Source: Ophelia neglecta (Eukaryota). Taken from it: a stretch of DNA of 64,000 bases. Below are positions 1 through 56,794 of this stretch, in pieces; the first letter of the stretch is position 1; every line of letters starts with the position of its first letter. Under the pieces are notes generated by a model, which saw nothing but the letters and a program-made list of their open reading frames with translations, was not told the origin of the DNA and did not search any database. Both the position numbers and the translations under genes were made by a program. The stretch covers positions 35,464,001-35,528,000 of the forward strand of contig OZ260667.1 in assembly GCA_965285935.1 (NCBI GenBank), read 5' to 3'.

Positions 1-410
1 GCACATCTGTATTATCATCTAGTGCAGAAATTTGTGTACATTTTTTCATGAATCCTGGTCTTTTACCAAAAACCTGTACCTGCAATTTTCAGATTTTACA
101 GTAACTAGTACATTTTTAAACCTAAAAACCCTGCTCTGTCTAGATATAATGTGGCAGGGGCTAGGTAAAACAATAACAACAAGCCTTTACGGTACAAATA
201 GTTTATTTACAATTAAATAATGTTGCACTAATGGAAGAAATAAGCATCATGGGTTCTAATATATCACAGGCAAATAGTGAACTATGCACAGTACTTTATA
301 GAACACTTTTTTTTTTGCAAAAGCACCCATGTAATTTTACTCTGTATTATTTCTCAGACATGATATTATGCCCCTCTTTACAAGTTGAGTTAATAAGGAG
401 TATTTGTTCA

Positions 411-3400
411 TTACGTCGGAGGACCATGTGTTTGGCATTCTGCAGGTGGCTCTCCAGATAAACAGAGCCGGCTATTAAGTAATGTAATGACCTCTTCTAA
501 AGAAGACTCCGGAACCTGAAAAGAGCAGTATATGACTTTATTTATTTCTAAATTATTCAGGAAATTGGACCTGAAGAAGTATCCATGCCAATCAAAAATG
601 AATTAAGTTTTATGTGCTGAAGCCACATAGCCATTCCCATAATTTACAATATCATCCAGTAATCCAATAGAGCACTAATGTTAAAATCAAATGGATAGCA
701 GTCAATAGACTCAATACAACTAGGAGAAATCTGAAATTGATTGTTCAGTGATGTCTGCCACAGTGTAGGGCCGTAGGCCTACACAGAACATTTGTCAACC
801 CTTGAGCCTGTAAGATATAAATGTTGATGATGTAGGAAAATGTGAATGAGGGGCTAGTGTGACTTGTGTACCCAACTCATATGTCAAGGCAATAAATATC
901 ACATTTATACACTTTAATTTGCACATTTAGTTCTTTACAAATGCATTGAAGCAAGAAGGGGGAATTTAATTTACTGAAGTAGTATTATGAAATCCTCAAT
1001 GCTTGCATATTGAGTCTTAGACTCCCCAAATGTGGCCGAGATAGAGACATAAATTATGTACCAGACAAATATAATAAAACAAATACTGGCTTGTTTTACT
1101 GAAGCAATATGGGCAATATGGGCCTACCACAAATCATATTTTTCTTGAACTTACATCCTTGAAAATATCACTTGTATCAAGAAATTGCGCCATATTGCCT
1201 CGCCCGGAAAGCTAATATTTGTGTCATACCGTACAGGTTTTCTACAGTGCGAATTACTACTTACCATTGTATAGCCAGCAAAGAATGAACTTAAATAATA
1301 CTCTTCAATGTTTGCATCAGCTATCGGACTTGAAACCTGGGCAACAATACCGTATTCACCTAGATGGAACCAAAGGTTGATGTTTGTATAGTGAATTTGG
1401 TTCCATCATTATTCCAACTGAGTCAGACAAAGAAATATGATAATCTTGATACATAGAGAACAGCTTTGTTCATTCTGTCAAAAAGCACATACTTGTAGGG
1501 CATTTTCCCTGCAATGTACACCACTGAGTGACCCGCAATCAGCCTGTACCAATATGTGTATCTGCAGTGTTGCCTATTTTCAAGCTTGAAAATGCAGGTA
1601 ACTGCCCTTTCCTAAGGTTTTGAATGATCAAAATGAAACATTTGCTGTGGAGTAATCATCGGCCCCCCTTCAAAGTGGCAGTTCACATAATAATCAACTC
1701 TTGTGGTATGCAAAAAGTACCACATCTACGGCATATAATTGTTATGGCGACTGGTTGGACTGAATAATTTAGGTTGAAGCATTGGCTACAAGTTAAATCA
1801 GATTGTCATTGATTTTTCTGTCAATCACTCAGTATGGAATAATTAAAGTTTATACACAGCATATACAGGTCAGCAAACTTACCAAAGTATAATCTTTATA
1901 GAAGACACTTATGTAGTACTCTAAGATGTGGGCATCTGCTATGGGGTCAGATATTTGGGCAACAATACCACATTCGCCTGGCAATGAAAATAACTTCCCA
2001 ATATAAGAAATTTAACAGTTTAATTTTACTTATTTTCAGGTTTGGCTTTCATTTTTTGAAACATTGGTTTACAACCCCAGCAATATGCAGCAGCAAAGCT
2101 AAACCCAAAAATAAATTTGACGGTCTAAAAACAGAAAGGGTACAAGTTCAATATCAAAGGCTGACCATAAATTATGTTCAGACTGGCAGACATGGCTATT
2201 ATTATGGTTAAGCCAAAATCTCTCTAACGACTTAAGCCATGTAGTATGGTTATGCTCATGATAACATGAACTATATTCATTTGTATTTAGGCAGGGATGA
2301 ATTAACAATACATATTTATGCAGTAAAGTGTGCTACTTTATATGTATCAAAATTACATATTTCTCACCTGCCCAACTCTTACATTTACATGTTTATCTTC
2401 ATTTAACCCAGTGGGTTTTTTTTCAACTGGAGAAGTTTGTGAACCAAGGAATTTAAAAAAATGATTGCCTCAACATTCAGCCTACAACTTGTATTATGGG
2501 TATACCTCAGTGGTTCAGGGAATGGGATTCACATGCTATTAGTAATTAATATTTATATTATTATTATTACCGGTATTATATATTTTATTCAAACTTTCCT
2601 TTTAACTATGAGACATTCTTCCTATTGTATGTCTAATGCCTGTCACCTGTGCCCATTCTTAGATTAATATCCAATTTCAAACTTTCTATACAACAAACTG
2701 TAAAATATTAAAGTACTGAACTACTTTTGAATAAAGCAATTAGAATGAACACTTTTTGCTACAAGGACAGTTAAATTTATACAATAGTACTGGTTATACT
2801 TTGTTGAAAAAGGTCTGAAAAACAAAGAAATGGAACCTCTATCACCATAAGGACATACTGCCCAGGAGCTTACCAGACGTATTAGTGACAACATGCAGAT
2901 CACGTTAAATGATAGAATATTGATAATAAAGTGCACACAGAGAACCTACATGCTCTTGTGGTCATAACGCAAAAAGAACTGCACCGGTGTGTCTACTTTC
3001 AACTATTGTGTTTTTGTAAGTCCAGTGTTCTGGGTGCATGAAAGCATTTTATCTCTATTTCAAACTGTCTAAATTTGCATATTATTTCATCTACTTTTTA
3101 TCATGCAATCTTATTTACATATTTTGAGCATAGCAATAAAACATCCATGGTATTTAATAACTGCATTTTCCCATCTTCCTAAACTGGACTGATCAATGGG
3201 CAATTCACATACGAGTTATTAAGTGAGACCGCCATGGGACTGTTAGTTGGCAACATAGTGGAAAGTGAGCCCTTTTCCATTGTTACAATGGCAGGTGTAA
3301 AAGAAATAGGTCTACTGCAAAGTTACTGAAAGTTGCCAGTCTTGATGAAGAGCAGTGAGCAGCCACAATTGAATAAATGGCCAGGCCAAATGTTTGTAGG

Positions 3401-6400
3401 GTGTCTAAACATATACTAATATATTAATCTTATTTGGTTTATATAATGTTCATATCACTGCTCTCAATAAACCCTGGCACCATTCTGTAAATCCTTCCCC
3501 ATAGCAAAAATGTCACATCACAATTGTACTCATGTTTACTTTATTGAAAAACTAGGAATAGAAAAGGATCAAATTAAAATACAAAGAGAAACATGTAGAA
3601 ACATAGAAGTGATGGGGTAACTGCTAACAAGTTAGTGTAACAAAGGGACATCAATCAGTATTAAATAAATGAGTCAACAGGAATTAATATTTCACAAGTA
3701 TTGAGAATTACAAAATTTCATGAATTTCCAGAATAATTAGTTTTCATTTTACTCAAAATTTTGAGTTTCTAGGGTACTACATTACAAAGTCATGGGTCGA
3801 GATTTATCATAAGTGGAAAAATGAACTGTGCTTCCCATAAATACTCACTAAACCCTAAGTCATCATGACTTCCCCCTATCTTGATCATTCGCCATGACCC
3901 TTCTGCTGTGTATATGGAATTTTCTGGAAACCTAGTCAATGAAAAACATGTTCAGCATGATTTCCAAATTAAGTGCATCCATATCAGACATAAGACTGAA
4001 TTTGAACTATTTTGATTGTCAGATTTAATCATTCCATAAATCACATTTGGAGGGATACAGTCAAACTATAAAGGTTGTTAGAAATGCATACCCTCCACCT
4101 GTTACATGTATAGTACACATGTGTCACAAGGTTCACCCCTTCTCTAATGAATTCACACTCTTTAACATGTCACTATATTCATTGCACTATTACTGCTTTT
4201 TCCTTTCAGTTCAACATCTTTCCAGTCAATACTGGTACATTTTTGGTGCTGGTTTGAGAAGTGGAAATATGGGGAGGAAATATTACAGACAGAAATGTTG
4301 GCAATTTCTGTAAATTTTACATTTAAAACAAGTTAAATTTTACAACAGCATTTCTAGTTCCCCAGATTATGCAGGATGTGAGACAAATTAAGATAGGATA
4401 AAACTTACTCATTTATAACTATTTTATTTCTAAACTACTTGTCCTTCTATACAATACAATAAAATAGTACTTGAAACCAATTTATATTTACCTTGAAACT
4501 GCATCAGAATCTAAGACTAAAGTGATGTCACCATCTACATTTGAATAGGAGAAAAAGTGTTCCTTTTCACAGTGTGTAGTTCCAAAGCTATAAAGAAGGC
4601 AATTTATGTTTTCATCAGATAACTGTGCTGCACGGCCCTTATCTCCAGTACATGTGGGTTATGATGTGTTAAAGGGAGGATTGTCTAAAAAATATGTTGC
4701 AGTGTATGAATGTACCATATGCACTATTTGATACACCATTTGTAACTATATTGAAGCAGATGAAAATCTAAATGGAATGATTATATTTGATATTGATGCT
4801 AATACTGCTATTTTATCTTTATTACAAGTTACATACCATTTTGGATAAAACAGTTGTTCTATAAGGGCAAGTCCTGCTAAATGAAGATTGTCTTTGTCTA
4901 AGCTTGTGATGTGAAATTTGTTCTTTGGTTCTGAGAATGCATGTGTTATAGGTCTATGTTGTGTGTGACCTACAAAGATAAGAATGCATAATACAGAATG
5001 CATAATACACAGAAATATAATACAATCAATATATGCTACTGTGGGAGGGACAGTCTGTGAATATTTAAAGAGCCATCCTACTTTACAAAACAAATAAAAG
5101 GGGTTAAATCAGAGGGCAGATTTTGATGCCCCCCTTCCTGAACTTGAATTACATTATAAGCTATCCAAATCCCATATTATCCCTATTTGATTACAATCCT
5201 TACAATGTTTGATAATTTTATTTGCCCCTGGCCCATGCCCATGTTAGTTTTAAAAAGCCCCCCCCCCCCCATATGCCTTATATCTTTTATCAGAATAGCC
5301 CATTCACAACTTAAATAATGGTTTGAATTAAGACATTATATATTGGGATCTCACTGAAGTTAATCAGAAATATACCAAAGACTCAGGTTTCAAAGACTCC
5401 TGACGATTACCCTCTTAATGTTATGACACTTAATACCAGCACTGACAGAGACCTTACCTGGCAGCAGTTCTTGTAAGTCTCTTTTGTCTAATGGCACTGT
5501 TGTGGCAGTGTCTACTTTGACAAAGTCTGATTTGGTGGATAGGGCTTGGATAGCTTTTTCTATATCAGACTCTTCAACCTGCATATGAATATAAATAATG
5601 ATAGTTGTTTGAAGTACTTGCAATTTATAATAAATCAGTAACTATTACCAAATGGTATAAACCCAACAGGCCTTTTTAAAGGAATATCCTTAAAGGATCA
5701 GGAATTTAATATCTATTTAATATATATTACAGATTCAAACAGGAAAGCTAGAATATCCTTTCCGTAAACTGATTTAACTGAAATCATAATTATATAATTT
5801 CTTTGCAATGTTTGGTTATTTTATCAAACTTACCAGTATATAGTCTGTTTGATATGAAGAAAGACAAAATACAGATATTTGTGCATCTGCTAAAGGAATT
5901 ATCAATGACTTGGCTATGTTTGAAATCCCTGACACTTTGACAGAGGAATATGCCCCTGCAGACACGCTGAGGGGAACCCAAGTACCCAGGGCAGTGTGTT
6001 CTGCTACATTCTGGATGACATCTATAAAAAAAACATTAATTTATAGATGTGTATCACATGAATCATACATTTTTTAATCTTTTATCGGATCTTGTCCTTT
6101 TATCTAATATCAATTATATCTTCCACTTGGAGGGGTGAAGCCAAGATGAAAATACTATCCTACACCCAACCCACCTTTTAAATGGAAAAGCCACCATACA
6201 GCTCAAAGATAAAAACAACATATATTAACGGGGTAGTTACTTTTATCACTTGTCTCAATACACAAGACATAAACACATAATTGTGATTACACCATGTAAC
6301 AGGGGCAATTCTTCTGTGATTTTGCTGTAAATTAATAATTCTTGTAAAGAAGACTTTCAAAGAATGAACAGCTAAACCATGCGCAACTTACCTGTAAATA

Positions 6401-8580
6401 TATTCTTGTCTATTACAAGGGTATAGTTATCACAGGTCTCAGTTAATGTAAAAAACCTGCACCTGAAATATTGGCAGTCAATATTTAATATGCATCTACA
6501 TTTGTATATGTTATTCTTCTTTAAAACTTAAATTACAAAACATGGGAAACATCTTAATGCAGTAGACAATGAAATGACCTGGTCACTTGGTATGCTTGGT
6601 TTCTCAATGAAAAAAAGGGTTTAGAAATGCAAACCCCCCACCCATTGAAAATGATGGTAAATCTATTGTCGGACAGTCCACTTCTGTAAAGCTTTTAAAC
6701 GCCAAGGGCAATTTTGAGAACTGGATAATGTGTGGCTTTAGATAAGTTCCCATGTATTTTTAGTCTCGAGCTGCTAAAATAAATGCTATATTCATGATTT
6801 GGAATTTTGAACTTCAAAATTGAAACCAAGGTCTAATTGGAGAACTCATTGACAACTGAATGAGTAAAATATGGTCTTCAATGGGTTCCCAATGTACTTC
6901 TAGGTTGTAACAAAGCTAAAACAAAGGCTTTATTCATAATTTTTGTAACTGAACACACAGGATAAATGTGAGAACTTAGTTTGATAAGATATGTGATTTT
7001 GCATACACTCTGACTCTCCATATTCTTCTAGGCTCTTGCTTCTGCATTAAGGCTATAATCATCAGTGTGCGAATTTAACGATAGACAGATAGACAATGTC
7101 TATAGAAAAAAAAAGGCACGGTCTAAGAAGTCTCTTATTTCCTCAGACCAATTGTCTATAACAAAATTCATGTTTATTGTGCAGTAAACCAATTTATCCC
7201 GACGTAACCTGTAAACTGCGGTAAAGTCTGTGTTATGAAATATGCCATCATGCCAGAACCTATTTCCGGTAAACTTAGCGACATCTAAATGTGATAAATA
7301 CGTATTTGAAACAACACAATGTAGTACTACTTCTTGTAGGTCCAGAACATCAAATGTTGCAGGCTAGTAGTGTACGTTTGTGACAGTTGTAAATTGGTTC
7401 CCGGTTTCCGGCGTAATTTTGCTGATGTCATACCGCGCCAGCAGAAGAATGTTATTTTTTAAGATATGTGAGTGGAGCAAACCCGGGGGAGCAAAGCCTG
7501 GCCAGGCAGTGAAAAGTGAACAAATAAATAAGATAAAATATTATTTTACTTATTCATTTTCACTGTTAAAGAGTCCATAACATTACTACATTACAGCTTT
7601 TTACACGCCCACAGAAATCTTATCTTCTGCAGATTTGGTCTATGAAAATGTGTAAAGGTCTATAAACTTTTCATTTTTCATAGACCACTTGTCTACAAAG
7701 CTAAAAAGTTAATGTCACACACTGAATCATGATTTTATCAATTTGTTCTAGAAAAATGAGGGTCTGAAGGTCAAATCTGATAATGCCATTAGAATAGCAA
7801 TACATATGCTCCCAGTACATGTTGAAAGCCTAATTGCTAAAATAAAGAAGTTCCATCATGCATGAGCAATTAGGCCTACTATGTTTTAATAATGCATACC
7901 TTCGCATTGGCACCAACCTTAACTAGCTTATGTCCATCCACCAGAGTCTCATCCCTGTTAATTTCAGCTTTGCAACTACAGTGAAACCTGTGAATTAAGG
8001 CCACCCAAGGGACTGGAAAACACTGGTCTGATTTCAGAGGTGGTCTGTTTAGACATGTTTTTAACATTGAAAGCATACAGCATGGTCCTCATATTAGTGG
8101 CCTGAATTTGCAGGTGGTCTGATTATAGAGGTGGTCTTTAAGGCAGGTTTCAGTGTATTATACTTTTGCTGCAGAGAGCACACAAACTTTTACAATATAT
8201 GAATAGCTGCTATTAAACTTTTGGCTATTGGAATTTTATTAAAAGTGCTTAAAACGATTATACTTTGGCTGCAGTGCAAACAAAATTATATATATTTGAA
8301 TTTTTTTTAATACCTGATGTAGTATAGGCAAAAGTGTCCAAAATACTACTTGGAAAAAACACCAAACACGCTAGTAGTATTAACCAATCAAACAAGGAAA
8401 GCTTCAATGTACCAAGTAGGCCTGTGTAACTAGTATAGGGTTTTGCCTGCAAAACTGAATTCTGTCTTACTCTGAATTGCCGAGCATTCCAATCCTGACT
8501 AGTTCATGCATACATCTGGCAATTTCTTGTTTTCTAATGGACGCTATCTTTAGCCTATGATCCAAAACATTCAAGTCCAT
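411..8580 (-). CDS. CASTOR1: CASTOR/GATSL-family ACT-domain protein (cytosolic arginine sensor for mTORC1), spliced, about 333 aa per isoform
   Basis: Exons (minus): 8580-8471 MDLNVLDHRLKIASI..., 6462-6392 CRFFTLTETCDNYTLVID, 6021-5834 ...IAKSLIIPLADAQISVFCLSSYQTDYIL, 5578-5458, 4969-4837, 4587-4492 HFFSYSNVDGDITLVLD, 3931-3849 WRMIKIGGSHDDLGF, then 1977-1883 OR 1359-1265, then 515-411 VPESSLEEVI...stop. All introns are GT-AG and phases close (1002 nt). Motifs match human CASTOR1 as recalled (CKFFSLTET, STYQTD, WRMVRIGG, ECGIVAQI). CASTOR1 versus CASTOR2 cannot be assigned for an invertebrate gene. Confidence 0.93.
1082..1219. mobile_element. Short degenerate MITE-like remnant
   Basis: Imperfect inverted ends: aatactggcttg...gaagcaatatgg at the left versus ccatattgcctcg...agctaatatt at the right. 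Confidence 0.3.
1265..1359 (-). CDS. CASTOR1: CASTOR alternative exon 8b (EYGIVAQVSSPIADANIEEYYLSSFFAGYTM)
   Basis: 95 nt, acceptor ttggttccatctag, donor ATG|gtaagt, phase 1 to 0, open frame; 20/31 aa identical to 8a; Gly at the position of human D304. Confidence 0.85.
1883..1977 (-). CDS. CASTOR1: CASTOR alternative exon 8a (ECGIVAQISDPIADAHILEYYISVFYKDYTL)
   Basis: 95 nt, acceptor ttttcattgccag, donor TTG|gtaagt, phase 1 to 0, open frame; keeps Asp at the position of human D304. Confidence 0.88.
7063..7724. mobile_element. Non-autonomous DNA transposon (hAT-like) in CASTOR intron 1
   Basis: Ends CAGTGTG...CACACTG, many subterminal tagac/gtcta motifs on both sides, CpG-rich interior; only a partial flank duplication (aatcat). 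Confidence 0.5.
7979..8155. mobile_element. Tc1/mariner (pogo/Tigger-like) MITE, copy 1
   Basis: TA|CAGTGAAACCTG...CAGGTTTCAGTG|TA; closely related copy at 49605-49782. Confidence 0.8.
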
Positions 8581-8707
8581 GATCCTGTGCTGAGCTGTCA
8601 GGACACAGGAAACCATTCCTCCGACGGTAAAATAATCCAGGTCAGCGAAAGAGTTTCAACGAAATTGCGTAACCAAACGCGGGACTTTGCGCGTTTCCGT
8701 GGTAAAT
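8581..8707. promoter_or_regulatory. Bidirectional promoter and 5' UTR region between CASTOR and RAD1
   Basis: 127 bp between divergent ATGs (8580 minus, 8708 plus); locally CpG-rich (aacgcgggactttgcgcgtttccg) in an otherwise CpG-poor window. Confidence 0.75.
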
Positions 8708-11700
8708 ATGTCTCTTTCTACTCAAGACGAAGAAGATGAGGATTACATATTGGTAGCCAAGTTAGATAATGCAAAAAATATGTCAAATATCCTGAAGGCA
8801 ATTCACTTTAAAGACGTAAGTTTCAAAGCAACAAAATCATCAGTAAAGTATATTATCGCTCACTCTAGTTGCGGCAACAAAATCTATATCAACAGAATAA
8901 AACTAGCAGTCACCCGTGGGCAACCACGGTGAATTGGGCAGAAGTTGAAAGTGTATTTGAGAAGAGCAGTTTTCATATGCGACTTACTTAGGGTGAGAAA
9001 AAAAGTGAAGGGGTAGATCTAAAAACTATGAAACTATTACTCATAAAAGTAGAGTTTTTTTAAAACTGTATTCCATTCATTCAAATCACAGGTACGCGAG
9101 CGGTAGGGGTAAACACCGAAACCGACCGAAACCGACCGAAACCGAGAAATGTGGACCGAAACCCTCTGAAACCGGGGCCAATCTGGTAGTTACTTGGTTG
9201 AATTGCTTATGGACGTGGGTAATATTTGTAGACGAACAATTTCCCAGGCGCTTGGCACGTCTGTTTTCTTTTTAGTATGCCAAAAAACAAATTTACGATG
9301 TAATGTGCGGACACCGACAGATCGGTGGCCATGACACTTCTAGCCCCCTGGTGGGGCCATCTGGTGGCGGTTTCGGTGTCGTGGAAATTGTCGTGGAGTC
9401 TCTGGCCAGTAGTGTTCAGCGATAAATACAGCATTTGCAACTTTATACCTATTCAGGGGTTTATAGGTACCTTAAACAGGTTTTAATATGATTGAAACTT
9501 ATGTAAGTCACGGAGCTGTCAAACTTTATCTGTCAAAATGCCTCAATGTTTACATCCGTTTACGTGTGAAAAGGGCACCAGAGGGCGGGACTCGCTGAAC
9601 ACTACTGGCCAGAGACTCCACGACAATTTCCACGACACCGCCACCAGAGGGCCCCACCAGGGGCTACAAGTGTCATGGCCACCGAACAGCCGATGTCCGC
9701 ACATTACATCGTAAATTTGTTTTTTGGCATACTAAAAAGAAAACAGACGTGCCAAGCGCCTGGGAAATTGTTCGTTTACAAATATTACCCACGTCCATAA
9801 GCAATTCAACCAAGTAACTACCAGATTGGCCCCGGTTTCAGAGGGTTTCGGTCCACATTTCTCGGTTTCGGTCGGTTTCGGTCGGTTTCGGTGTTTACCC
9901 TTACCCGTACGCGAGGCGTCTATCCCCTACTACCTATAGATAACTAAAGGTTTGCAACTTCGATGCTGCAGGGCCCGCAACTTAGTGGTCCAAGCTGTAC
10001 TTCGGGATATATTCACTCCAGCAGTGATTTTCGGCAGACAACGCCACTTTCAGGAAATAAAAGTATCACAAAAGCAACTAATTCGAACGTGTGTTCTTTT
10101 TGGTCCATAATGAAGCTGTCCCGATTAAAAGTAATCATATCCGAGCTACCCATTCATATTTTACCGAGTCTAAGTACGGCTCAAGCCATTGGAGACCGTC
10201 CATCTTTGTCAACAAGTCGGCGGCACCGGGCTCGACTCTGATGCGGCCGCTGATTGGTCAGACTCGTAACTTTAATATTTTTCCAAAATAAAATACTAGT
10301 AAATAAACCACTATTTCTTTTTTCGATGTGTTTGCCGATTCGGAATTTGTGTGCATAAATACAAAAACATAGAATGGGTAAATATTTTATAATAAGCATT
10401 TTATTACTGATCGCCGTGTATCATGGGATCGAACCGCCATCTTGAATGGAGACCTAACAACAACATTTTACGAACGATTCGGACATTTACCTGTTTACTT
10501 GTCTACTCATCTCCCTATTGCAAGGTGAAACTGTGTAAATATCAATACCCCCCCCCCCCCCTGTTAGAGATCGTATCAATTGCCTGCCCCCTCCCCCCCC
10601 CCCCACACACACACACACAGACATTCTGTCGACCTTCGTGTAATAAGTTGGCCAAAATAGGCTTGATTGATTTGATCAGAATCAATCAAATGAATGAATA
10701 GATTAATTGCAAATAGCTAAGAGACATTGTTGCCCCAGTAGACAGTGAAACGTCTGAGTGAAACCTGTGACAAACATTAGGTTAACGAGATTGACTTCAA
10801 TCTAGGTCGACCAATGGGCAATAGGCTATCTATGTACTACGTGGCTGCTGTATGTGGCGGGCCTGCCTGGTTACGCTGAAGATCGATCTTGACAGGCAAG
10901 CAACTTACCATTGATATTTGGCGAAAATTACTGAACGAGTGCCAGAAATGGCTCGAAATGGTATTAAAGTGGACTAAAACACACAAAGGGTTCGCATAGA
11001 TAATCATTGTTTGGAATTTATTGGCAAACATTGTTATGGCAGCCGAGAAACACGACTTAGACGCGATATCGGTGGCCTAATACTTGGACCGACAAGTTGG
11101 GAGTGTAGCGGTGGGGTGTTAACACTGGGCGCACAGCGAAGTTGCAAACCTTTAGTTATCTATAGGTAGTAGGGGATAGACGCCTCGCGTACCTGTGATT
11201 CAAATGGATAAAAGAAAAAAAGTCACACAGTCACAATATGAAAATATAGATAATGGCAACAAGTACAGGTTATCTTTAAAATGAATGGCAAATGACTGCA
11301 AATAACTCCATTCCCTACTATCCCATAAGAAAAAAAAGTTTAGTAAATTTGCCTTTTATTTTTATATATTTTTTTCTGTTTGAAACAGTAAGCAAATCGG
11401 TAAAATGTTCTCATGCAAATTAGGTATCTTATTAACTTATTTACTAAATTCCTCTTTTAACTGTTTTTCTAACTTGTTGCGAAAGATAAAAATAAATTGT
11501 ATTAATATCTATATAACATCATGAAGATGAAAGTATACAAACTTTTTATTCATGTTAGATTAACATAAAATTTCGCTACCTAGCACAATGTTTGATTTGC
11601 TACTACATTGTATGAATCCCCTGAACTAGCCATGGACAGTGCCTTCCCCCACTCCTACCCATCCCCATAATATTAATGACCACTCTCCTGCACCCACAGT

Positions 11701-14700
11701 GATTTTGCTGACCATCGGCCATTTGCCGACAAAAATGGTAAATGTCCTAAACTTTTAAAAAGCTTCCGGACATTTGTCCGATGGCTTTTGCCGCCTGGTA
11801 ACCTGTCAGAATCAATACAGCTCGTTTATAACGCTTGTAGAAACAGATAACTATAGTTTATTTTATGTAGTTTGTCCTGGCTAAATCCAGCGGATGTTAT
11901 TTACATTTTTATTTCCTCCGCGAAACAAAGAGAGCTCGTATTTGTTAGAGCGCCGCTCATTGGTTGAGTGATGTTCAGTCTCGCGAATTAGACAGCCTGT
12001 TGTTATCTAGCAGCTGTTTACTAGAAGTATATACGATGCCCCCTAGTTTCCATCTGCCGGGAAAATCTCCCATGCTCCGCGCAACATGTGCAGTTCCAAA
12101 TTGCTGAGCCAAACTACCAAGTAATGGTGGTGGGACAGATGTAGTGTCACTAATGTGTGTCACTGGTGTGTGTCCCAGTATTGTGACGGTATGGGGAGCT
12201 GGCAGACGTGTTTGCTTACGGCAAAGCACATTCATGAAATGAATAGAACTATTTTTTAATTTCTGTTTCAGAGTGCTATCATCTTTGCCAGCTCTAATGG
12301 GTTGAAAGTAACAGTTGAAGATGCCAAATGTGTCCAAGCCAATGCATTCATACAGAAGGAACTGTTTCAGGATTTTGTCATAAAAGAGGAACAGGCCACT
12401 TTCAAAGTTAACCTCACGGTTCTTCTGGTAGTGAAATTTATACAGGAATCAAATACTGAACGGCAGTGCTGGAAATTAAAAAGTCTTTACTGCAATGTCT
12501 AGCTAGTCTTGAGAATTACACAACGTCTCGGAACCAGGCTACAACTAATTTACTCACCCAATAAATCATCATCAGAATGAATTCATAAAAATAATGTAGT
12601 TTTGGGCAGAAAACCAGACATGCTGTATGACATGCAAACAGATAGAGCTAAATTATTGAATTCTAATGAATTCCAAATCCTTTATAATGTTTTTCAAAAT
12701 CTCTAACTGGCAAGTCAATGTTTTCTTCAGAAGTTCTGGAGATTCTGTCATACTTATCTACTCCTGTTGATTCAGGCTTTGTCTTGTTACTTCACCAGTA
12801 TTATTATCTGGATATTTGTCATTGCAGTCATACTTAATATATTGTGTAAGCAATGTCTTCAAAGTAAAGTTAGTGTCTTAGCAGGCCACAGTATTTACCT
12901 TTCAAGTTCTTTGTCTCAAGACTGTCTTAGTGTAGGCTTACATTTTGAGTACCGAGTACATAGTTTTTCGCAACAGAACGTTGAATTTTACATCTGTTTA
13001 TTTATATAATTTTGTGTGGGTCACAGAGGTGTTTTGTATCTGTATCATTTATGGCCTGTCAGTCAGTTTGACCAGCAGTTGGGGGTTATCAACTGGGTGT
13101 AGAGAAATTCTACCAGTAAAAACAGATGAGAGGTGACTTTTCCACATGATTGTTGAGTGGCTGGCGGCATTGGAGCAGTGCGTCTGCCATCTGGTCATGG
13201 TATGCACCCGCCTCTGGATCCTCCCTTATAATAAGTACCGGGGTAATAAAGGGTGTCATTGAATCAAACACAGCCATAATGTAATGTGAAGGTACCAGGT
13301 GCCAAGTCAGTTATTTTTTTATTGGGTGAGCACTATTGGTTCCTGCCGTATTGCGCCAATTATGCTGAATTTTTTATTTTTTCAAGATTCATTGGCTGAA
13401 AAAAAACTAATATTCAAATGATTATAATATACTTTATTTTATGCAGAACTAGCTGTAAATTTTGTTTATCTGGTATCAACAAATATGGATTACCTCTCTT
13501 TTTCCAAGGGAAATTGCCAGCATCATTATATATTATATTTATTGCAGGAGTGTTTGAACATTTTTGGAACCAGTCCTATTCCAGGGGTTACAGCAGCTCT
13601 GAAAATGTGTTATGGCGGTTATGGTTCTCCACTTGTTCTTATGTAAGTTGACATTCATTTAGTATTAGTATTATCATGACTTAGGTAGACCTTTAGCAAT
13701 CAGTGCATTTTATGATATGTTCTAAACTGGCGGTTAAATTAATAAGTTTGTGACATACCCTGTGCAACAAATATAAAGATATATTTATTGGTGTCATATG
13801 ATACGATACATATCATATTATATATGCCACTTGATATCGATGCGTATCCTGATACACATTCACTAAGGTCACAGCCACAACCCTATCATTTTAGGAACTC
13901 CGAAGGAAAGGCCAGTATTGACCACTTCTTACTTAGCAGCATAAACAATCAAGCACCAAGTCATGTAAAAAAAAAACCTGGTGTTGTTTTTTAGCAGGTG
14001 AAAAAATATAAAGGTTTGAGTAACAGATGTATCCAATCATTTTATTACTTATTCATTGTCCTTACATAGTAATGATAAAAACTAAGCAAGGTATCAAAAT
14101 GTCTACCTTAGGCTGGAAGAGAATGGGGTTCTCACAGACTGCAATATCAAGACTCAGGAACCTGATGAAACTTTAGATTTCAGTTTCAGCAGTGCTAATG
14201 TTGTAAACAAAATAATCATGAAGGTGAGAATAATTTTATAGAATATTATCAATATGGTCTATTTCATTAAAAGCATGATGGAAGGGTGGAATGTGTCATT
14301 TTTTCAACCTTTTGCACTTCATGAAGTAATAATTTTTAATTTCCTATGAGCATGTGCATTATTGTGTTCTTTTCCAAGTTAACATTGGTGTTTACTCTCT
14401 GACCTTATTCATTTCTTGCCAACTCAAACGACATTTCTGTCAAATCATGCCCTTAATTTTGAAACCTTTTAATTTCAGTCTGAATGCCTGAAAGAAGCAT
14501 TCCAAGAGCTGGACATGTCCAGCGAGGTTTTACAGATCCTTATGTCACCTGACCAACCTCACCTCAGACTCTCTACATTTGGAAACGCAGGAAGTACTCA
14601 TGTAAATAAGTTCAGTGGGGCAGGTATAGACAAAATTAGCATAGGTGTTAAAAAAAAGTGTCAGATTATTTGGATTTGCACATTATGCCTTGTTGCTGTG

Positions 14701-15785: not shown

Positions 15786-15939
15786 GGATCTTCTATGTAT
15801 GCCATTCCTGGCAGGATTTTAATTCACTTTCTACTTAACAACGCACCAATAGCAAACATCCTTAAGATATATCAGTTCAGTGGAGAATATGAAGTGTATA
15901 TATTTACATATCATTTTATAATTACCTGTATATACTTAT

Positions 15940-15945
15940 AATAAA
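15940..15945 (+). terminator. Probable RAD1 polyadenylation signal AATAAA
   Basis: First AATAAA about 155 nt after the stop, followed by T-rich sequence. Confidence 0.55.
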
Positions 15946-18207
15946 AACATGACCAGACTTTATTTTAGGTTTTATTTCCTTTAGAAACATTCAGTGAAGG
16001 TTCCTAAATTACATAGATGTCCAGTGCAATCAACAAATCATAACATACAATTGCAAGCCACTCTAGGAATTAAAATTACAATAACTATGTTAAAGATGAT
16101 GGTGCTATAAACAAATATGTCTTCCAAGATCATGCTAATTATTATATATCATATATACAAAATTAATTAAAACCTTATTAACATTTTCACACAGAAGACC
16201 GCATGATATCTCTCAGACCTCTATATATAGTTAATCTTTCTCAGTCTTCTAAAACCTTGTCTTTCGTAGATCCTTTTATGCACAGCAACTTCTTACATCT
16301 TGAAACTGTTCAGTAGAAATGCATTAATTTTGGTTAATAAAGGCAAAACATTGGTTGCAATGGAAATGCTTGCCCTAAACTTTCAAATGCACAATTGAAT
16401 ACTGCAGAGGCCAGTCTGATCTGCTTTCACAACCGTCATGTTCACTCCATACTGTACACATAGATAGCACATATTGGTAGATAGAACTGTCACTGGCTTC
16501 CAATTCTTTTATTTTAACAAATTGCTATCAATTATCAAATGTATGCATATTTAAATTGTTGAGGGTATATTTGTTGCTATAAATAAGCATTTTAATTAAA
16601 TTTGAAAAGAAATATATAGCAAAAATGATAGCCAAAGGTCCTGTGATTTTAATGTTTAATTTGCCAATTTGAAAAAAAGCTATAATTCAACTATTCAAAC
16701 CACTGTCAGCACCAATGCAGTTAGTTTAAGCTCATGGCTATTCCATTTAAAAGTATGAGAGGTTGGTCGAACACCCCTGTGTAAATTTGGGTCTTCATTT
16801 ACAACTGCATTCTTTAACCTTATTGTACCTTTTGGGACCATGATGGACCTACAGGTAAAAAGGTACATTCCGCCACTCACCACACTCTCATCACCATGTG
16901 AATGGAATTTTCCACTATTAATCCCCAACTAAGGCTTCAAGTTTTAATTTGTTTTGTCTCACAGAGGAGCAGCCAAACCAACTTAACCTACAGATATAGA
17001 TTGACAGGGGATGAGGATAAGAGAGGCAAGTATGAGCTACACCCATGAATAAGAGGGGGAGAGGATTAAAAGGGTGGGGGGGGGGGAAGAACCACACACA
17101 TGCAGAGAATATACCACTGACAGGGAGGGGGAAACCAAACAGAGGGTGATCATTAATCCTGACAAGGGGGGGGGCTGTACCAATGAAGGGTGAGGATTTA
17201 GGTATACCATCAGGAGGAGTAAACCAACAGAGGGTGAGGATATCGACTGACAAGCGGGGGACCTGATGGACAAAGTGCTGTACATGAATTAACAAACATC
17301 AAGTCTCTAACATTTTGCACATGGTGATTACAAAGATTACAAAAAGAGATAGCTTTGTGTAATAAAAACTTTGTTTACTGAAATGCATTGTTGATAAACT
17401 AGTATACATGTACACATTCGGTAAAATATTTCACTACATAGAGCATACACATAGAGTGTGCTTCCTTCAAGGACAACATAACAAATACCAAACCAGCCTT
17501 AGTCGGGTGCCCACATTCCATTGTAAAAAGCCCTAACTAATTAATTACAAATGGAATATGCATATTAAATGTATGACTTAGTTTTAATTAGGCCACATGC
17601 TAGTCCAAAAACATGTCTAAAATCAGACCATATTATGCTTGATACTATATACATATTTATTATGTACGAGTCCATTTTCTTGCAGATAAACACTGCAATA
17701 TCCATTTATAAATATATATCCATGTTAACTTGAGAGGGACATAGGTCAAGCTCATTTATTGGCAAAACAAGCATGTCATGTGCATCTGATTGAAACTGGG
17801 TTAAACTTCAGGGTGTATTGCCGGGGAGGGGTGCCAGGGCATACCCCTGACTGAGACACTAGGTCCCTTAAAGCACTGTAAAACTCTCATGTAGGCCATT
17901 TCAAGTATTAATAAATACTGTTATTTGAATTAATTTATTTGAGTAATGAAAAAATATCCAATCCACTCACCAATAAGAAAAAAGTCTGCCTTACATTGTT
18001 AGTAAGCATAAGACAATTAAAATGCTCATCAAAATCAATTTAATAACATAATGGCAGCCCGTTAAAAATGCATTCCGTCTGATTATTCTAAAACCATTTG
18101 TTCTTTAATTTCAGTTCATACAATAATCAAATCATCCCAAAAATGAACAAATTGTGGTAAAATTACTATCATCAGAAATGACTGGTAATTGGTATACAGA
18201 TTAAAAT

Positions 18208-28582: not shown

Positions 28583-31500
28583 TCAGTATCCACCCCTGCC
28601 TCTACCCCTGCCTCTGCTCATCTGTATCCCTCTGCCACGTCCCCTGTCAAAGTCAAAACTCTCTCCTCGGCCCCTGCCTCTAGGTCGAAAACTAACTGGC
28701 CTAGGTTCTTCATACATTGTTCTCTCAGAACCTTCACTTTCATAATATGGCTCTGTCCATTCCTCGTACTGTTCAGGTGGTCCTCTGGAGCCTGGTGGGG
28801 GACTACATCCACGGCTATGCCATTCTCTAGGTGGCATGTCTCCAGTTTCCCATTCTTGATTGTATTCATCAATGTTACCAAAATTTGTCTGATCATAATT
28901 TTCTTCAAAATCATGGTGAGGAAATCCTTCCATTGGATGTGGTTGAGGAATTCTCTCGCGTGGAAAATTCCCCCCTTGGTGTTCTCTATTCTGGAATCTG
29001 CCCCTAAATGACCCACGTACAAGTTGTCCCATATTATCTGGCCTTCCTCGTCTTGGAATTAATCCTGAATCTGGAGGTCCAAATCTGTTAGTATTCAATT
29101 CTAATTCTTCAGGCCACTCACATTGTTCATCCAATTGATGTTGCTGCTCTGGTGGCTCAAGCCTGTGATCTCTGAAGAAGTTTCCTTCTGGTCTTTCAGG
29201 ACCAGCCCTGAACCCACCTCTGCCACCTCTACCTCTCACAGATACTCCCTCTCCAAATCTCCCCCTTTCTTCTTCCGAAAATTGTGCCTGTTCAGCTTCT
29301 CTGCTCTGAAAGAACCTTCCTCTTCTATTGCCAAATGATTCAGCTCTATCTTCTTGTCTTTGCCATGGTGCATCTGGGCCAGATAGACCCTCACTATCAA
29401 ATGGCCCAAGGATACTTTTGACCATACCTCTTCCTACCGGACCCTCCCTCCTGATCTGATTTCCTCTAGTAAAAGGCTGCCCCATTCCTCTTAATCCAAA
29501 ATGCCTGGAACTATCTTGAGGAACTGGATTACTCCTAATAGCAGGACCAACCATTCTAGATAGGGGACCTCCTCTGATAATTGTCATACCTCTGTTTACC
29601 ATGACTTCTCTAGTGGGAGTGTCCAACAAACTTCTTATACCTCCCCGTATAGGCAGCCCGCCCCTTTTAGGCACATTGTCTCTTTTTGGTAGACCATCCT
29701 TTTTGGGGGGATTGTCTTTTCTTGTTTCACTATCCTTCAACATTGAACCACCTTTTTTTGAGGAATCCTCTCGTTCAGGTTCGCCAGCCTTTTTCAGTGG
29801 ACTACCCATCAAACTCTTTACACCAGCTTGACTAGGAGGACCACTCATATTAGGTTGAACATCCTTTTGGGGTAGATCTAGCTTTTTCAGTGGACCATCT
29901 TTTCTTGGTTCATCCTCTTTCTTCAGTGGACCACCTGCTTTTGGTGGACCATCTTGCATTTGTGGACAATCTACTTTTGAAGAACTCCCAGATTTTGACA
30001 GACCATCTCCTTTCGACAAACCACTCATTTTTACATGACCATCTAATTTTTGTGTATCTGTTTTTGATGGCTCAGTTTTTGGTGGACCATCTGGTTTTGG
30101 TGGATCAACCATTTTTGGTGGATCAATTGCTTTTTGTTCACCATCATTATTTGGTGGTGGAGCATCTGTTTTCAGAGCATCATCTTTTTTCAGATTATCA
30201 TCCCTTTTTGTTGAATCTGGTTTTCCAATATGCATTCTTAGGTTGGGTGGACCCTCTTTTATTGGTTGAACATTTGAATTTGGTAACTCATCTCTCCTCA
30301 TTGTTTTGGGATCTGTAGACAAACTTGCATTTTCTTTGTTCAATCTTTCTTTTCTTATTTGCATTGATTCTTTTTCAGTCTGGTCAATAGATGTTTCCTT
30401 TTTTGTTTGGTCTCCAATGCTTTGTGACTTTTCTTTGCTGCCTAAATAGTTTTGTACAGATGGTTTACTTTGCACCAATGGGTCATCTTTTTTCAGAGTG
30501 TCAACTCTAGTCTTTAAACTTTCTTTCCCTTGATTGTCAAACTTGGTTGGTGGTACCAATTCCCTTGATGAAACCTCTTTTTTTGTTGTAGCTTCCTTTC
30601 CTAAATTTTCATTCTTATTTGATGTGCTTCCGGTTAACGGCTGTGCAGCTGTTTCTTTTGAACAAAATCTGCCTTCTTTCTGTTTATCTCCTGGGATATC
30701 AACCTTTCTAGAAGTTCCTTGGCCTGATGGACTATTATTTCGGGGAGAACTTGTTTTGCTAGATGAAACTTCTTGTCTACGAAGTCCGATTCTGCCCTGT
30801 ACACTATTTCTGTCTGGAAGCCCTCTGTCAGATTCATGACCCTTGGATCCAAACATTACAGGAGGGCCACCCCTTCCAACAGAACCTGTTCTATCTGGAG
30901 CTGTACAAATTCCTGGATGATCTTCCCTCCTTGGTATATTTTCATGTCTTAGTGAGTCCTTTCTTTCTTGGCTAGTATCTCTGTCCCGGGCACCTCCATG
31001 TCTGGGAGGACTAAATCTTTCAGGTCGAAAATCTCTTTCAAAAGCACCTCTTCTGTGCAAGGGCACATCCCTTCTTTGTGAACCATCATGATGTGGTGAA
31101 GGACCTCTTCCTGGAGGACCATCATTATGTGGTGGATGACCTCTGCTGAGGGGACCATCATGATGTGGTGAAGGACCCCTAGTGAGTGGACCATCATGCT
31201 GTGGTGGAGTACCTCTGGAGGATCGTGCCTCTAGATGTGGTGCAGGTCCTCCAGTGGGCTTTCTATCTAGATGTGGTAGAACTCTGGTGGGAGGTGTATC
31301 TAGAAGAGGTGAAGGGCCTCTTCTTGGGGGACCAGAATGTTGTGGTAGAGGCCCTCTGAAAGGTTGACCTTCACGGCGTAATGAAGGATCTCCTCCTGAT
31401 GGGTCATCAAGTTGTGGGGAAAGACCCCTTCCTAGTAGACCAACATGATATAGTGAAGGTCCTCTTCCTGTTTGACCATCATGTTGTGGTAATGGACCGC

Positions 31501-34500
31501 TGTTTGATGGGTCATCACTATGTGGTGGAGGAAATCTTCTTGGTGGTCCATCATGGGGTGGTGGGGGACCTCTTCCTGGTGGACCATCATGATGCAGTGG
31601 ATGACCTCTGCCAGGTGGACCATCATGGTGTGGTGGGGGACCTCTGCCAGGTGGACCATCATGGTGTGGTGGGGGACCTCTGCCAGGTGGACCATCATGG
31701 TGTGGTGGGGGACCTCTGCCAGGTGGACCATCATGGTGTGGTGGGGGACCTCTGCCAGGTGGACCATCATGGTGTGGTGGGGGACCTCTGCCAGGTGGGC
31801 CATCATGGTGTGGTGGGGGACCTCTTCCTGGTGGACCATCATGATGCAGTGGAGGACGTCTGCCAGGTGGACCATCATGGTGTGGAGGAGGCCCTCTTCC
31901 TTTTGGACCATCATGTAATGGAGGACCTCTTACTGGTGGACCCTCATGTTGGAGTGGAGGGCCTCTTCCTGATGGATCATCAACATATGGTGGGGGACCT
32001 CTTCCTTGTGGGCCACCTCGTCCTGGTATTCCCCCTCTTCTTGATTGACCACCTCTTCCAGGTGGACCACCTCCAACTGATGGACTGCTCAATAATGGAG
32101 GACCACCTCTCATTGACGGACCACCTCTATTTATTATGCCACCTCTGATTGATGAACCACCTCTGCTCAAGAGATTACCTCTGAGCAAATGACCACTTGG
32201 TGTAGCCACACCATCAGATCTAAATTCCCCAACTCTCTGTGGAGGACCATCAAATCTAGACGGTACACCTTCAAGTCTACATTCCTCTATTCCCTCCGGA
32301 GGATCATCAAATCTAGAAGAGCCAAATCTACTCAATGGACCACCTCTGCCTAAAGTTTCATCTAGTGTTGTTTGATTATCACAATTATTTTCATCATCAA
32401 ATAAATTATCTGTCCCAAGCTCTTGAAACCTAGATGGTAAAAATCTTCTCGGAGGGCCCTCCCTTTTTTCCGAGTGATCACTAAGTGCCAGTGGGCTGTC
32501 TCTTCCTGGAGGCCTCTCCTGCCCAAAAACTCCAAACTCATCTGGAGGTTCATTTGGATCTGACATAAACATTTCCTGTGGAGGTCTGTTCCTTGGGTGA
32601 TGATCTGGTCTGTAGAGAGCATCCCTTCCCGATGGAGCATCTCTATCACTTGCTTCATCAAATCTTGAAGGTCCAAACCTACGAGGTTGTTTGTTTGTAT
32701 CTAACAAATGTTCTGGTGGAGGGACATCTCTTCCTAGGGCAGAGTGGTGTCTAAAACTAATACCTCTTCCAAGAGGACCATGTCTACTTGAAGAATCCTC
32801 TTGCCTAGAAGGACTATCTCTGGCCATTGGTGAACCACGCTCACCAGATGGCCCAACTTGTCTTGGCATTAAATCTCTATCCATTGGACCCAATCTTTCA
32901 GCTTCTCGTGCAACAGTTGATTGACTTTCATGATGTGGAGAATGAAACAGGGGGAATCCTGCACCTTTTGGTCTTGAAGGAACTCCCCTCAGATTAGGTG
33001 CTGATGGCAAACCCACATCAAACATTCCCAAATGTCCCATACCTTGTGATTTCTGACCACCTTCATCCATATTTGACTTGCCTTGCCTATCGGTTCCCCC
33101 CATTTCCATTCCTTTTAAGCCTTTATGATCAGTCACTTTTTCTTCCATAAGAGAAGAGCTACTTCGTGGGGGTCCATGGATATCCCAGTTACTCTCTTCT
33201 GACCCAGATAATGGTGTGTGTTTAAAAGTAGTCATAAGAGAGGGAGGGCATTCTCCAAGAAGCCCAACTCTTGCTACACGTTGATCATCCCTCCCCTGCT
33301 CATTTCTCCGCATATCAGGTGCCTGGCCCCAATTTCTTTTTCTTTCATGTTCTTCATGACTTAGACCCTGCAAATGTGGTTCAGCAACTCTTTTTCCTCC
33401 TCCTTGTCTTTCCAGAGGCCAACTGCTTCTGGGCATGTCTAATCTCGGAGGACCCCGATCACCAAATGGCAAAGGTCCATCCCTCTCATGAAAAGGACCT
33501 TGTTCTCCCCATTCACCTACTTCCGTATCTCTTTTTTCTATTTCTGAAGAAACACTAAATGAAGCATGAGAATCACTGGGAAATTGTTCTTGAGTAGAAG
33601 CAAAAGGCACAACATGTTCGTTCCTTCCAATAAATCCCATTCCACTATTATTGCCAATGCGACTGCTTCGCTCCAGCAACAATGGGCCTTTATAATCTCC
33701 AAGAAGTGATGGTTTCTGCATTGATTCAGAGGTTGGTGGGTGAATTTGATCCACATTCTGTTGCTCAAAGGGGAGTCCACTTCTTCCCCTCCCAACAATT
33801 CTGTTTCCACTAGGCATTGACCCCACTGAATGGAATGGATTACTTGTTGATACGCTTGAATTTGGCTGCTCCACAGGACCGTGTGGACCACTTGGCAGCG
33901 GGAGATCTTTTGCAATTCCTCTTCCTGGCCCCATAGGTGGAAAGTTAATTCGGTCATCTACATCTAATATCCTAGGTTTAGTCTGTTCTGAAATGTCTTT
34001 AGCCGATGGCCCTACTCCATGTCCATAGTCAAAGGTTTGTGTTGTGACAAAAGCTGCTTGTTTGGCTGGCAGGTCAGAGGGTCCTCCTTTTTCAGGTGCT
34101 TCCTTGACATCAATTTCTGTGGTAGGGGCCTTAGATTCAGAAGGAGGTATTACTACATCTAGGTTGGCCTTTCCATTATTACTTCCCTTGTCTTTTCCAA
34201 TGAATACTTTTTTCCTTTCCTTATCATCTTTAGATCTTTCATCAAGTTTATTCTTTCTTTCTTCTTTATCTTTAAATCGCGGGCTTCTGCTTCTTGACCT
34301 TTTCTTTCGGTCTCCCATAGGAGATACACGGCCAAACCTACCAAATCTACTCTTGGACCTGTGGGGCAATCTCCTATCTCTAGAGCGTGATCTAGCCCTT
34401 TGTCTTCGGTCACGTGATCTTGAGCGCTTCTCAGTTGACCATTTCTGATCCTTGCTTCTTGAGTCGCGATCTCGTGACCTTTCTCTCCGTCTACGCGGGG

Positions 34501-55582: not shown

Positions 55583-56263
55583 TTATGATTAATCGTAGAC
55601 AATGACCAATGAATTTTAACAGGTGCTTATTCAATCCAAATTTATGAATAAACACCTACACATCTACTTGCCGAGCTGTGCATGGTCATGCTGCCATCTT
55701 TCCCACTTTGTCCCACCTGCGTGTATTCATGACAACTTTTCAGGAGAAACCGGGCCACCCCACCTTGTTGCAAAGCAATACAGCTTTGAGAATTCTGGAG
55801 AGTAGTTCCTGTCCCTGTTTTTCGTATCATGGTAAGCCAGATAAAATTGCCTAATGTTTGCAATTTATCTGGCACTAAATAAACACCACACTAAGGAGGT
55901 CTTGACTGGACACTAATTTGTGACAAAAATTGATGACACCTAAAGTTGAACAAGCAGTAAAACTGTACGCATGTATATGTTATAATTCTTGCATATCAAT
56001 ATTTACAATAAAGTTTAAAAAACATACATAACATTGTTTAAATACAAGTTACAGCGATGTGCTAGGAATATGATGTGTCCCGTTTTGAAAGCTGAAGGCA
56101 AAGCTAGGATAAAAGTAAGTTCAGTTATGATAAATACAAAAGTAGGTACATGTACATGTTTCTCTCTCAAATACTAATAACCATTGTGAAAATGGAATAA
56201 ATCTTTAAGTAAAGAAAAATAAATTTACATTCACCTAAATTAATATTATCAGTAATAAACTTC

Positions 56264-56794
56264 CTGGTGCTTATGTATATATTTTACTTAATTTTTTACT
56301 TTGACACTTATGTTAAAGAGAAATTCACAAATATGCTTATTATTAGCAAAATAACCACCTAACTTTTAATTATTCTGGGAAAATAAAATCATCGCAATTA
56401 AGGCAAGTGTACAGGTGTCACACAGTCCAAAATAGTAACATGTTTTTTGATGGCTTCGGTCACAGTATTTTCAGGGCACTTGCATGTTTATAGACCAATT
56501 AATTGAAGTGAAAAATGATGTTCCCTGCTCTCACTTAAATGGACTTGCTGGTGCTTATGTATATATTTTACTTTATGTTCTTCTTTGACACGTCAAAGAA
56601 AAATTCTCAAATATGCTTATTATAGGCAAAATAACCGCTTTACTTTTAATTATTCGGGGGAAATAAAATTATAGCAATTAAGGCAAGTGTAAAGGTCTCG
56701 CACAGTCCAAAATCAGTAACATGTTTTCGATGGTACAGGTCACAGTATTTTCAGGGCATTTGCATGTTTATAGATCAATTTATTGAAGTGAAAA
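56264..56794. repeat. Direct tandem duplication, period about 284 bp, two copies
   Basis: ctggtgcttatgtatat... starts at 56264 and 56548, collinear through ...gaagtgaaaa. Confidence 0.9.

Follow-up and report, generated by a model that had tools for sequence, protein, structure and literature searches.

CASTOR1 is the textbook case of a cytosolic arginine sensor for mTORC1, and what is known of its biology comes almost wholly from mammals, which have two genes, CASTOR1 and CASTOR2. In the human CASTOR1 pocket the guanidinium group of arginine is held by Asp304's side chain and by the carbonyls of Gly274, Thr300, Phe301 and Phe303; arginine binding was not measurable in the D304L, I280A and S111A mutants, and the wild-type protein binds no other tested amino acid (PMC5020642). 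Asp304 is also present in human CASTOR2, whose insensitivity to arginine has other causes, and ACT4 of CASTOR1 confers arginine binding when placed in CASTOR2 (PMC5020642). The S111A/D304A protein serves as a GATOR2 binder locked in the apo form, and arginine binding is passed on to the loop that releases MIOS by a rotation of the helices of ACT2 and ACT4 (PMC12477443). Here we describe a CASTOR (GATSL) gene in a stretch of 64,000 nucleotides from Ophelia neglecta (contig OZ260667.1, positions 35,464,001 to 35,528,000; hereafter the window), in which the exon encoding the ACT4 part of this pocket is present in two tandem copies, one with Asp (8a) and one with Gly (8b) at the position of human Asp304. 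An earlier note on the same DNA, made from the letters alone, had proposed these copies as mutually exclusive pocket exons, and the structural roles that it gave to D304 and I280 were found in the literature (PMC5020642; PMC12477443).

Two tandem versions of the ACT4 pocket exon

The two copies of exon 8 are spaced 523 nt apart on the minus strand of the window (Table 1). Each is 95 nt long, begins in phase 1 and ends in phase 0, lies between an AG and a GTAAGT, and is translated into 31 residues (ECGIVAQISDPIADAHILEYYISVFYKDYTL for 8a and EYGIVAQVSSPIADANIEEYYLSSFFAGYTM for 8b). The frame was followed with a local script across the junctions, from the end of exon 7 (3849, phase 1) to the start of exon 9 (515): inclusion of both copies leads to a TAG at codon 13 of 8b, 56 nt ahead of the last junction, while skipping of both shifts the frame, with a stop once 13 codons of exon 9 have been read. 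Since only mRNAs with a single copy keep the reading frame, the layout of 8a and 8b as mutually exclusive tandem exons is well supported. Direct reading reproduced all that the earlier note had given for the pair in terms of coordinates, splice sites, phases and open frames, as well as the consequences of double inclusion and double skipping.

The copies share 20 of their 31 residues (BLASTP E 1e-14), with different codons at nine of these 20 positions and a nucleotide identity of 63/93, and an alignment of the flanking introns gave no similarity above background; on recomputation, the residue and codon counts and the dissimilarity of the introns came out as previously reported. A PDB search aligned both exons without gaps to residues 277-307 of human CASTOR1 and 278-308 of human CASTOR2, with E-values of 2e-7 to CASTOR2 and 5e-6 to CASTOR1 for 8a, and of 6e-6 and 1e-3, respectively, for 8b, in agreement with the earlier assignment of the segment to the ACT4 region and of its Asp/Gly and Cys/Tyr differences. 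Regarding the arginine-contacting side chains, the Ser111 equivalent is supplied by shared exon 3, whereas the D304 equivalent, position 28 of the exon, is Asp in 8a (GAT) and Gly in 8b (GGC); at position 2, which corresponds to human C278, 8a has Cys and 8b has Tyr. The invariant CASTOR core is kept in 8b (G279, I280, V281, A282, Q283, P287, Y296, Y297, S299 and F301). The equivalents of Ser111, of the Leu-Gly-Phe lid and of the YQTD motif are all encoded by exons common to both isoforms, the GATOR2-binding YQTD having been located in exon 3, in a shared exon as the earlier note had held.

Gene identity and copy number

Direct reading of the splice sites, for which tblastn searches with CASTOR proteins from other animals served as a guide, gave nine exon positions, whose lengths, counted with one copy of exon 8, total 1002 nt; this corresponds to 333 codons and a stop, which is the normal size of a CASTOR protein. 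Searches of the whole 762-Mb assembly with the Pfam profiles Castor1_N (PF18700; in six frames) and ACT_7 (PF13840) revealed this locus as the single CASTOR locus, without a credible second one. Against a cut-off of 26.5 bits, Castor1_N scored 29.3 bits at 6396-6467, with a further match of 22.3 bits at 8476-8556, and ACT_7 scored 36.2 bits at 5828-5938, the position of ACT2. At the pocket exons, the ACT_7 score was 26.7 bits for 8a (1877-1996), or 27.2 bits with its frame neighbours, and 25.7 bits for 8b (1256-1360), slightly under the cut-off of 27. A genome search with 8b detected exactly two copies of the pocket exon, 8a and 8b themselves, and no third, decayed copy was found in the window at E < 0.05.

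An in-frame ATG at 8616 lies 36 nt upstream of the start that homology supports (8580) and represents an alternative start that would add 12 residues (MVSCVLTAQHRI).

Table 1. Exons of the Ophelia neglecta CASTOR gene (window coordinates) and exon 8 copies of other animals (locus coordinates), with the corresponding RefSeq models.
Feature	Position	Strand	Description
CASTOR (GATSL) gene, coding part	411..8580	-	Castor1_N and ACT_7 matches, tblastn hits to CASTOR queries from other animals, splice sites read directly
Exon 1	8471..8580	-	ATG at 8580 (MDLNVLDHRLKIAS...), donor GTAAGA
Exon 2 (RFFTLTETCDNYTLVIDKNIFT)	6392..6462	-	Castor1_N core
Exon 3, ACT2	5834..6021	-	Ser111 equivalent (ISVF) and GATOR2-binding SYQTDYIL motif; common to both isoforms
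Exon 4, poorly conserved linker	5458..5578	-	Donor set by frame; least certain boundary
Exon 5 (RPITHAFSEPKNKFHITSLD...)	4837..4969	-	tblastn, splice sites
Exon 6 (EKEHFFSYSNVDGDITLVLDSDAVS)	4492..4587	-	tblastn, splice sites
Exon 7 (RFPENSIYTAEGSWRMIKIGGSHDDLGF)	3849..3931	-	Phase 1 end, donor GTGAGT; Leu273-Gly274-Phe275 lid equivalents
Exon 8a, Asp304-type ACT4 pocket exon	1883..1977	-	95 nt, cag| acceptor, GTAAGT donor
Exon 8b, Gly304-type ACT4 pocket exon	1265..1359	-	95 nt, tag| acceptor, weaker pyrimidine tract, GTAAGT donor
Exon 9 (VPESSLEEVITLLNSR...GPPT)	411..515	-	Stop TAA at 413-411, then 3' untranslated region
Ptychodera flava (L011)	Gly-type 56064-56156; Asp-type 56361-56453		Both types
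Glandiceps talaboti (L012)	Gly-type 51214-51306; Asp-type 51497-51589		Both types
Saccoglossus kowalevskii (L014)	Gly-type 15883-15975; Asp-type 16149-16241		Both types
Nematostella vectensis (L013)	Gly-type 16386-16478; Asp-type 17151-17243		Both types
Porites (L015)	Gly-type 11198-11290; Asp-type 11640-11732		Both types
Lingula (L010)			Single Asp-type exon, no Gly-type
Rhopilema esculentum, jellyfish (L016)	Gly-type 8947-9039		Single Gly-type exon, no Asp-type
Nematostella vectensis, RefSeq isoforms			X1 Gly, X2 Asp
Ptychodera flava, RefSeq isoforms			X1/X3 Asp, X2/X4 Gly
Oculina patagonica, RefSeq isoforms			X1 Gly, X2 Asp
Porites lutea, RefSeq isoforms			X1 Gly, X2 Asp
Saccoglossus kowalevskii, successive models			Older Gly, newer Asp; differ only in this exon

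Selection, variation and splicing signals

Synonymous differences between 8a and 8b are in marked excess, their proportion (pS) being 0.75 against 0.21 for non-synonymous differences (pN; Fisher p 4e-5), in a test that is pairwise between the two copies. These values are far from the expectation under neutral drift and indicate that 8b is an exon constrained for most of its history, because long neutral drift would have cost it both frame and similarity. Over window positions 1-6000, three contig sets of DNA from this organism contained exonic alternatives only at 1961 (8a), 4884 (exon 5) and 5891 (exon 3), all of them synonymous (Val, Leu and Leu, respectively), and many other variants that were intronic. 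No disruptive variant in 8a or 8b was found in the three sets, and none of any kind was listed in 8b. A 26-nt deletion at 1699, also intronic, was observed in these sets.

An inverted-repeat search yielded one notable pair, a perfect 12-bp hairpin of the minus-strand RNA (1363-1374 and 1396-1407) with a 21-nt loop, which ends 3 nt ahead of the AG of the 8b acceptor and would enclose the pyrimidine tract and the branch region. It was rejected as a competing RNA structure: the 81-nt fold had a z of -1.46 against shuffles, which is not unusual, and it may be due to chance. GCATG-type motifs were absent between and next to 8a and 8b. As no competing RNA structure was found, the exclusivity of the two copies seems to rest on the reading frame.

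Asp304 and Gly304 exons in other animals

A comparative set was gathered by a library-wide search with exon 3 and two profile searches, after which the loci were fetched and searched with the exon peptides. CASTOR proteins of vertebrates, hemichordates, cnidarians and the brachiopod Lingula were returned, together with transcript assemblies, and some of these sequences had Gly304. A tandem exon 8 pair, with one Asp304 and one Gly304 copy, was present in five further species belonging to two phyla (Ptychodera, Glandiceps, Saccoglossus, Nematostella and Porites), with 95 nt, AG/GT boundaries and the same phase in all copies. For Nematostella, Porites lutea, Oculina and Ptychodera, RefSeq contains pairs of isoforms whose sole differences are these 31 residues and the split junction codon, and Gly-type mRNAs were present as intronless transcript contigs. 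Position 304 was the sole position that consistently separated the two copies, and every species with two copies paired Asp with Gly. Glandiceps was the only species recovered when a region-restricted search was made with the Gly isoform of Ptychodera.

Between Ptychodera and Glandiceps, the ratio of non-synonymous to synonymous divergence (omega, dN/dS) was 0.15 for the Gly copies and 0.07 for the Asp copies, and the Gly copies of Glandiceps and Saccoglossus gave an omega of 0.10 at a dS of 1.78. Over orthologous copies of both types dS ranged from 0.6 to saturated; the deeper comparisons were mostly saturated or nearly so, with a dN of 0.04-0.17 and of 0.36 for the anthozoan Asp copy. For the Gly-type exons, dN was 0.10-0.17 among hemichordates and 0.12 between Nematostella and Porites. 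Judged from these rates, both exon types are under purifying selection in hemichordates and anthozoans. The check by tblastn and dN/dS that the earlier note had proposed was run in this way and recovered Asp/Gly pairs in five species, none of them a close relative, with constrained orthologous copies.

Single exons were found in two animals, of the Asp type in Lingula and of the Gly type in the jellyfish Rhopilema. The introns flanking exon 8 of Rhopilema held no Asp-type copy, and Pro occupies the Ser111 position in Rhopilema and likewise in Lingula; given Gly304 alone in Rhopilema and Pro at Ser111 in both, the canonical arginine contacts are not shared by all animal CASTORs.

Some loci deserve separate mention. 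On the Lingula anatina contig LFEI02000359.1, the 3' half of CASTOR (exons 5-9) occurs twice in near-identical form (L010, 17332-19052 and 24612-26329), and a RefSeq model of 575 aa strings both halves together; this duplication was probably made by the assembly or is a very recent segmental one. In the short intron between the Gly and Asp exons, one part (L011, about 56190-56250) shows much stronger conservation between Ptychodera and Glandiceps than the remainder (TTTGTCATGC...ATCATGAAATGGTAT.TTCC.AAGCT) and is a candidate splicing-control element, of which no counterpart was found in the window. The Oculina patagonica model KAL9981270.1 (P0303, 372 aa) holds the Gly-type and then the Asp-type exon 8 in tandem, and is probably an artefact of ab initio annotation, since tandem 95-nt exons would break the frame. 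An intronless gene on a metagenome contig (P0044) was dropped, as it is uninformative on exon pairs.

Origin of the exon pair

The Gly exon lies upstream of the Asp exon in cnidarians and hemichordates, whereas the order in the window is Asp and then Gly. The closest relative of 8b is 8a (65%), followed by the Asp-type exons of Lingula and hemichordates, while identity to the hemichordate Gly-type exons is 45-48%; P0289, a Lingula-like Gly-type sequence from a metatranscriptome, also groups by lineage and not by type. The reversed order, the proximity of 8b to 8a and the grouping of P0289 favour an independent duplication, and a convergent Asp-to-Gly change in the lineage of the window is plausible on these comparisons. 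The tree of the 31 exon columns was poorly resolved, and approximately unbiased (AU) tests rejected neither a clade of all Gly exons (p 0.24) nor a clade of the window pair (p 0.07).

Elsewhere in the window

An uninterrupted open reading frame of 2557 codons, rich in Pro, Gly, Arg and Ser and with RS-dipeptide stretches, occupies 28583-36256 on the minus strand; the part of the window that is GC-rich and AT-skewed is due to it. It had no Pfam match, and a 12-residue unit (GRGPPPHHDGPP) recurs in it about 26 times, as a 36-nt tandem repeat at 31071-32015.

Discussion

Exon 8 covers human residues 277-307, which comprise the closing part of the pocket lid, the helix of ACT4 and the beta17-beta18 loop, and in the mechanism that we propose a single CASTOR gene would choose one copy of it for each mRNA. 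We infer the ligand and GATOR2 binding of the two isoforms from human mutagenesis. By this analogy, the 8a isoform would offer Asp as the salt-bridge partner of the arginine guanidinium, and would be arginine-responsive and free GATOR2 on binding arginine; the 8b isoform, with Gly304 and Tyr278, would form no salt bridge, and is predicted to be arginine-insensitive in the CASTOR1 sense because the charge partner Asp304 is missing. It would either stay on GATOR2 at any arginine level, like the apo-locked S111A/D304A protein, or answer a different or weaker ligand, and the ratio of 8a to 8b, possibly including mixed dimers, would set the extent to which arginine switches mTORC1 on. That 8a and 8b are functional, mutually exclusive alternatives we consider quite likely, with 8b presumably spliced into mRNA in this species, as its sequence suggests. 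The complete reading, namely a single CASTOR with an arginine-gated isoform and one that is not arginine-responsive in the manner of CASTOR1, is probable, whereas for the Gly304 form being unresponsive to arginine we would put the chances at roughly even.

Several observations weigh against this reading. A run search for the species returned three DNA contig sets from one sample and no RNA run; the sets span the introns and give no junction read for 3849>1359 or 1265>515; the acceptor of 8b is the weaker one (TAG, with a poor pyrimidine tract); and the stop caused by double inclusion, at 56 nt from the last junction, is borderline for nonsense-mediated decay. Two profile searches seeded with the window exons found no close relative in which the conservation of 8b could be followed, the nearest CASTOR being that of Lingula with its single Asp-type exon, and Rhopilema carries only the Gly-type exon. 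The weak acceptor, this negative run search and the fact that Lingula manages with one exon would all fit 8b being the leftover of an old duplication, never or hardly spliced productively, in a gene that makes only the Asp304 protein. We regard this as unlikely, because 8b has retained an open frame and canonical splice sites despite synonymous sites that are saturated, as well as the invariant CASTOR core, and because Asp/Gly pairs are annotated as alternative isoforms in two other phyla. It is very improbable that 8b acts as a poison exon, whose joint inclusion with 8a would tune the level of CASTOR mRNA through the premature TAG: such an exon has no need to keep a homologous frame of 31 residues with pN far below pS, its stop would lie just 56 nt from the last junction, and the second copy is annotated as coding in other species.

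A different question is what the Gly304 isoform would do if both exons are used. It may sense another metabolite, or arginine at low affinity, instead of being a constitutive inhibitor of GATOR2, which we hold to be a real possibility, if somewhat short of an even chance. A CASTOR that is never released would be odd as the sole form of Rhopilema; Gly-type exons also occur in the intronless transcript contigs, and their strong conservation in hemichordates and between Nematostella and Porites points to a specific function. Loss of the Asp side chain would enlarge and neutralise the end of the pocket, where the main-chain contacts can stay (PMC5020642). On the other side, in human CASTOR1 D304L had no measurable arginine binding and the wild type bound no other amino acid among those tested (PMC5020642). 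The earlier note had offered an arginine-blind constitutive inhibitor or a sensor of another ligand; a merely blind inhibitor became the less tenable form of this claim, as the Gly-type exon of Rhopilema stands alone, and altered specificity is at least as likely as a dead inhibitor. Returning to the mutually exclusive exons of the window, we find it rather doubtful that the Asp304/Gly304 pair arose, or was re-created, independently here and in the cnidarian and hemichordate lineages and that its Gly304 form senses a ligand other than arginine. If this were true, animals would repeatedly select a single CASTOR gene making one arginine-gated and one differently gated inhibitor of GATOR2, and the Gly304 form, the sole form in a jellyfish, would reveal a second input to mTORC1 through CASTOR.

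The window and the five other genomes indicate that a single CASTOR gene with an Asp304/Gly304 exon swap is present in many non-vertebrate animals, where splice choice would be a natural way to change what, or how strongly, CASTOR senses. With naturally occurring proteins, for example X1/X2 of Ptychodera and of Nematostella, the ligand of a Gly304 CASTOR can be asked for directly, and the answer bears on a non-arginine input of CASTOR and on nutrient sensing before the vertebrate split into CASTOR1 and CASTOR2.

Comparison with known systems

The window protein belongs to the same family as human CASTOR1 (GATSL3; PDB 5I2C, 5GT7 and 5GV2) and has the same domain order (Castor1_N, ACT_7), and 8a keeps E277, C278, G279, I280, V281, F301 and D304. 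It differs in having Phe at the position of Leu113, as in CASTOR2, and Lys at the position of Phe303 in 8a; moreover, the solved human chains are only of the Asp304 type, whereas the window has a Gly304 copy 523 nt downstream. Human CASTOR2 (GATSL2; PDB 9KPB) is a possible functional analogue of the 8b form, as it holds GATOR2 regardless of arginine and can heterodimerise with the sensor form, and its difference from CASTOR1 maps partly to ACT4 (PMC5020642). However, CASTOR2 is a separate gene that keeps Asp304 and owes its insensitivity to other differences in ACT2 and ACT4, whereas in the window splicing of a single gene would yield the alternative form, in which this Asp is missing. The proposal of the earlier note that splicing does here what the CASTOR1/CASTOR2 pair does in vertebrates is therefore retained as a loose analogy.

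Among mutually exclusive exons that switch ligand specificity, IIIb and IIIc of FGFR2 are the classical case. As in FGFR2, tandem homologous exons encode part of a ligand-contacting domain and one is used per transcript; that class consists of cell-surface receptors and channels, whereas CASTOR is an intracellular amino-acid sensor upstream of mTORC1. The RefSeq pairs of Nematostella, Porites, Oculina and Ptychodera, with the Saccoglossus models, show the same Asp304/Gly304 swap of one exon 8. Literature searches found no account of pocket exons in CASTOR that are alternative or mutually exclusive, in line with the earlier note, which knew of none, although the swap was already present in the automated RefSeq isoforms of other animals; it seems to be new as a described feature of biology. 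The RefSeq pairs exist as automated annotation only and have the order Gly-Asp, whereas the order in the window is Asp-Gly, which may add an independent case of the same exon swap.

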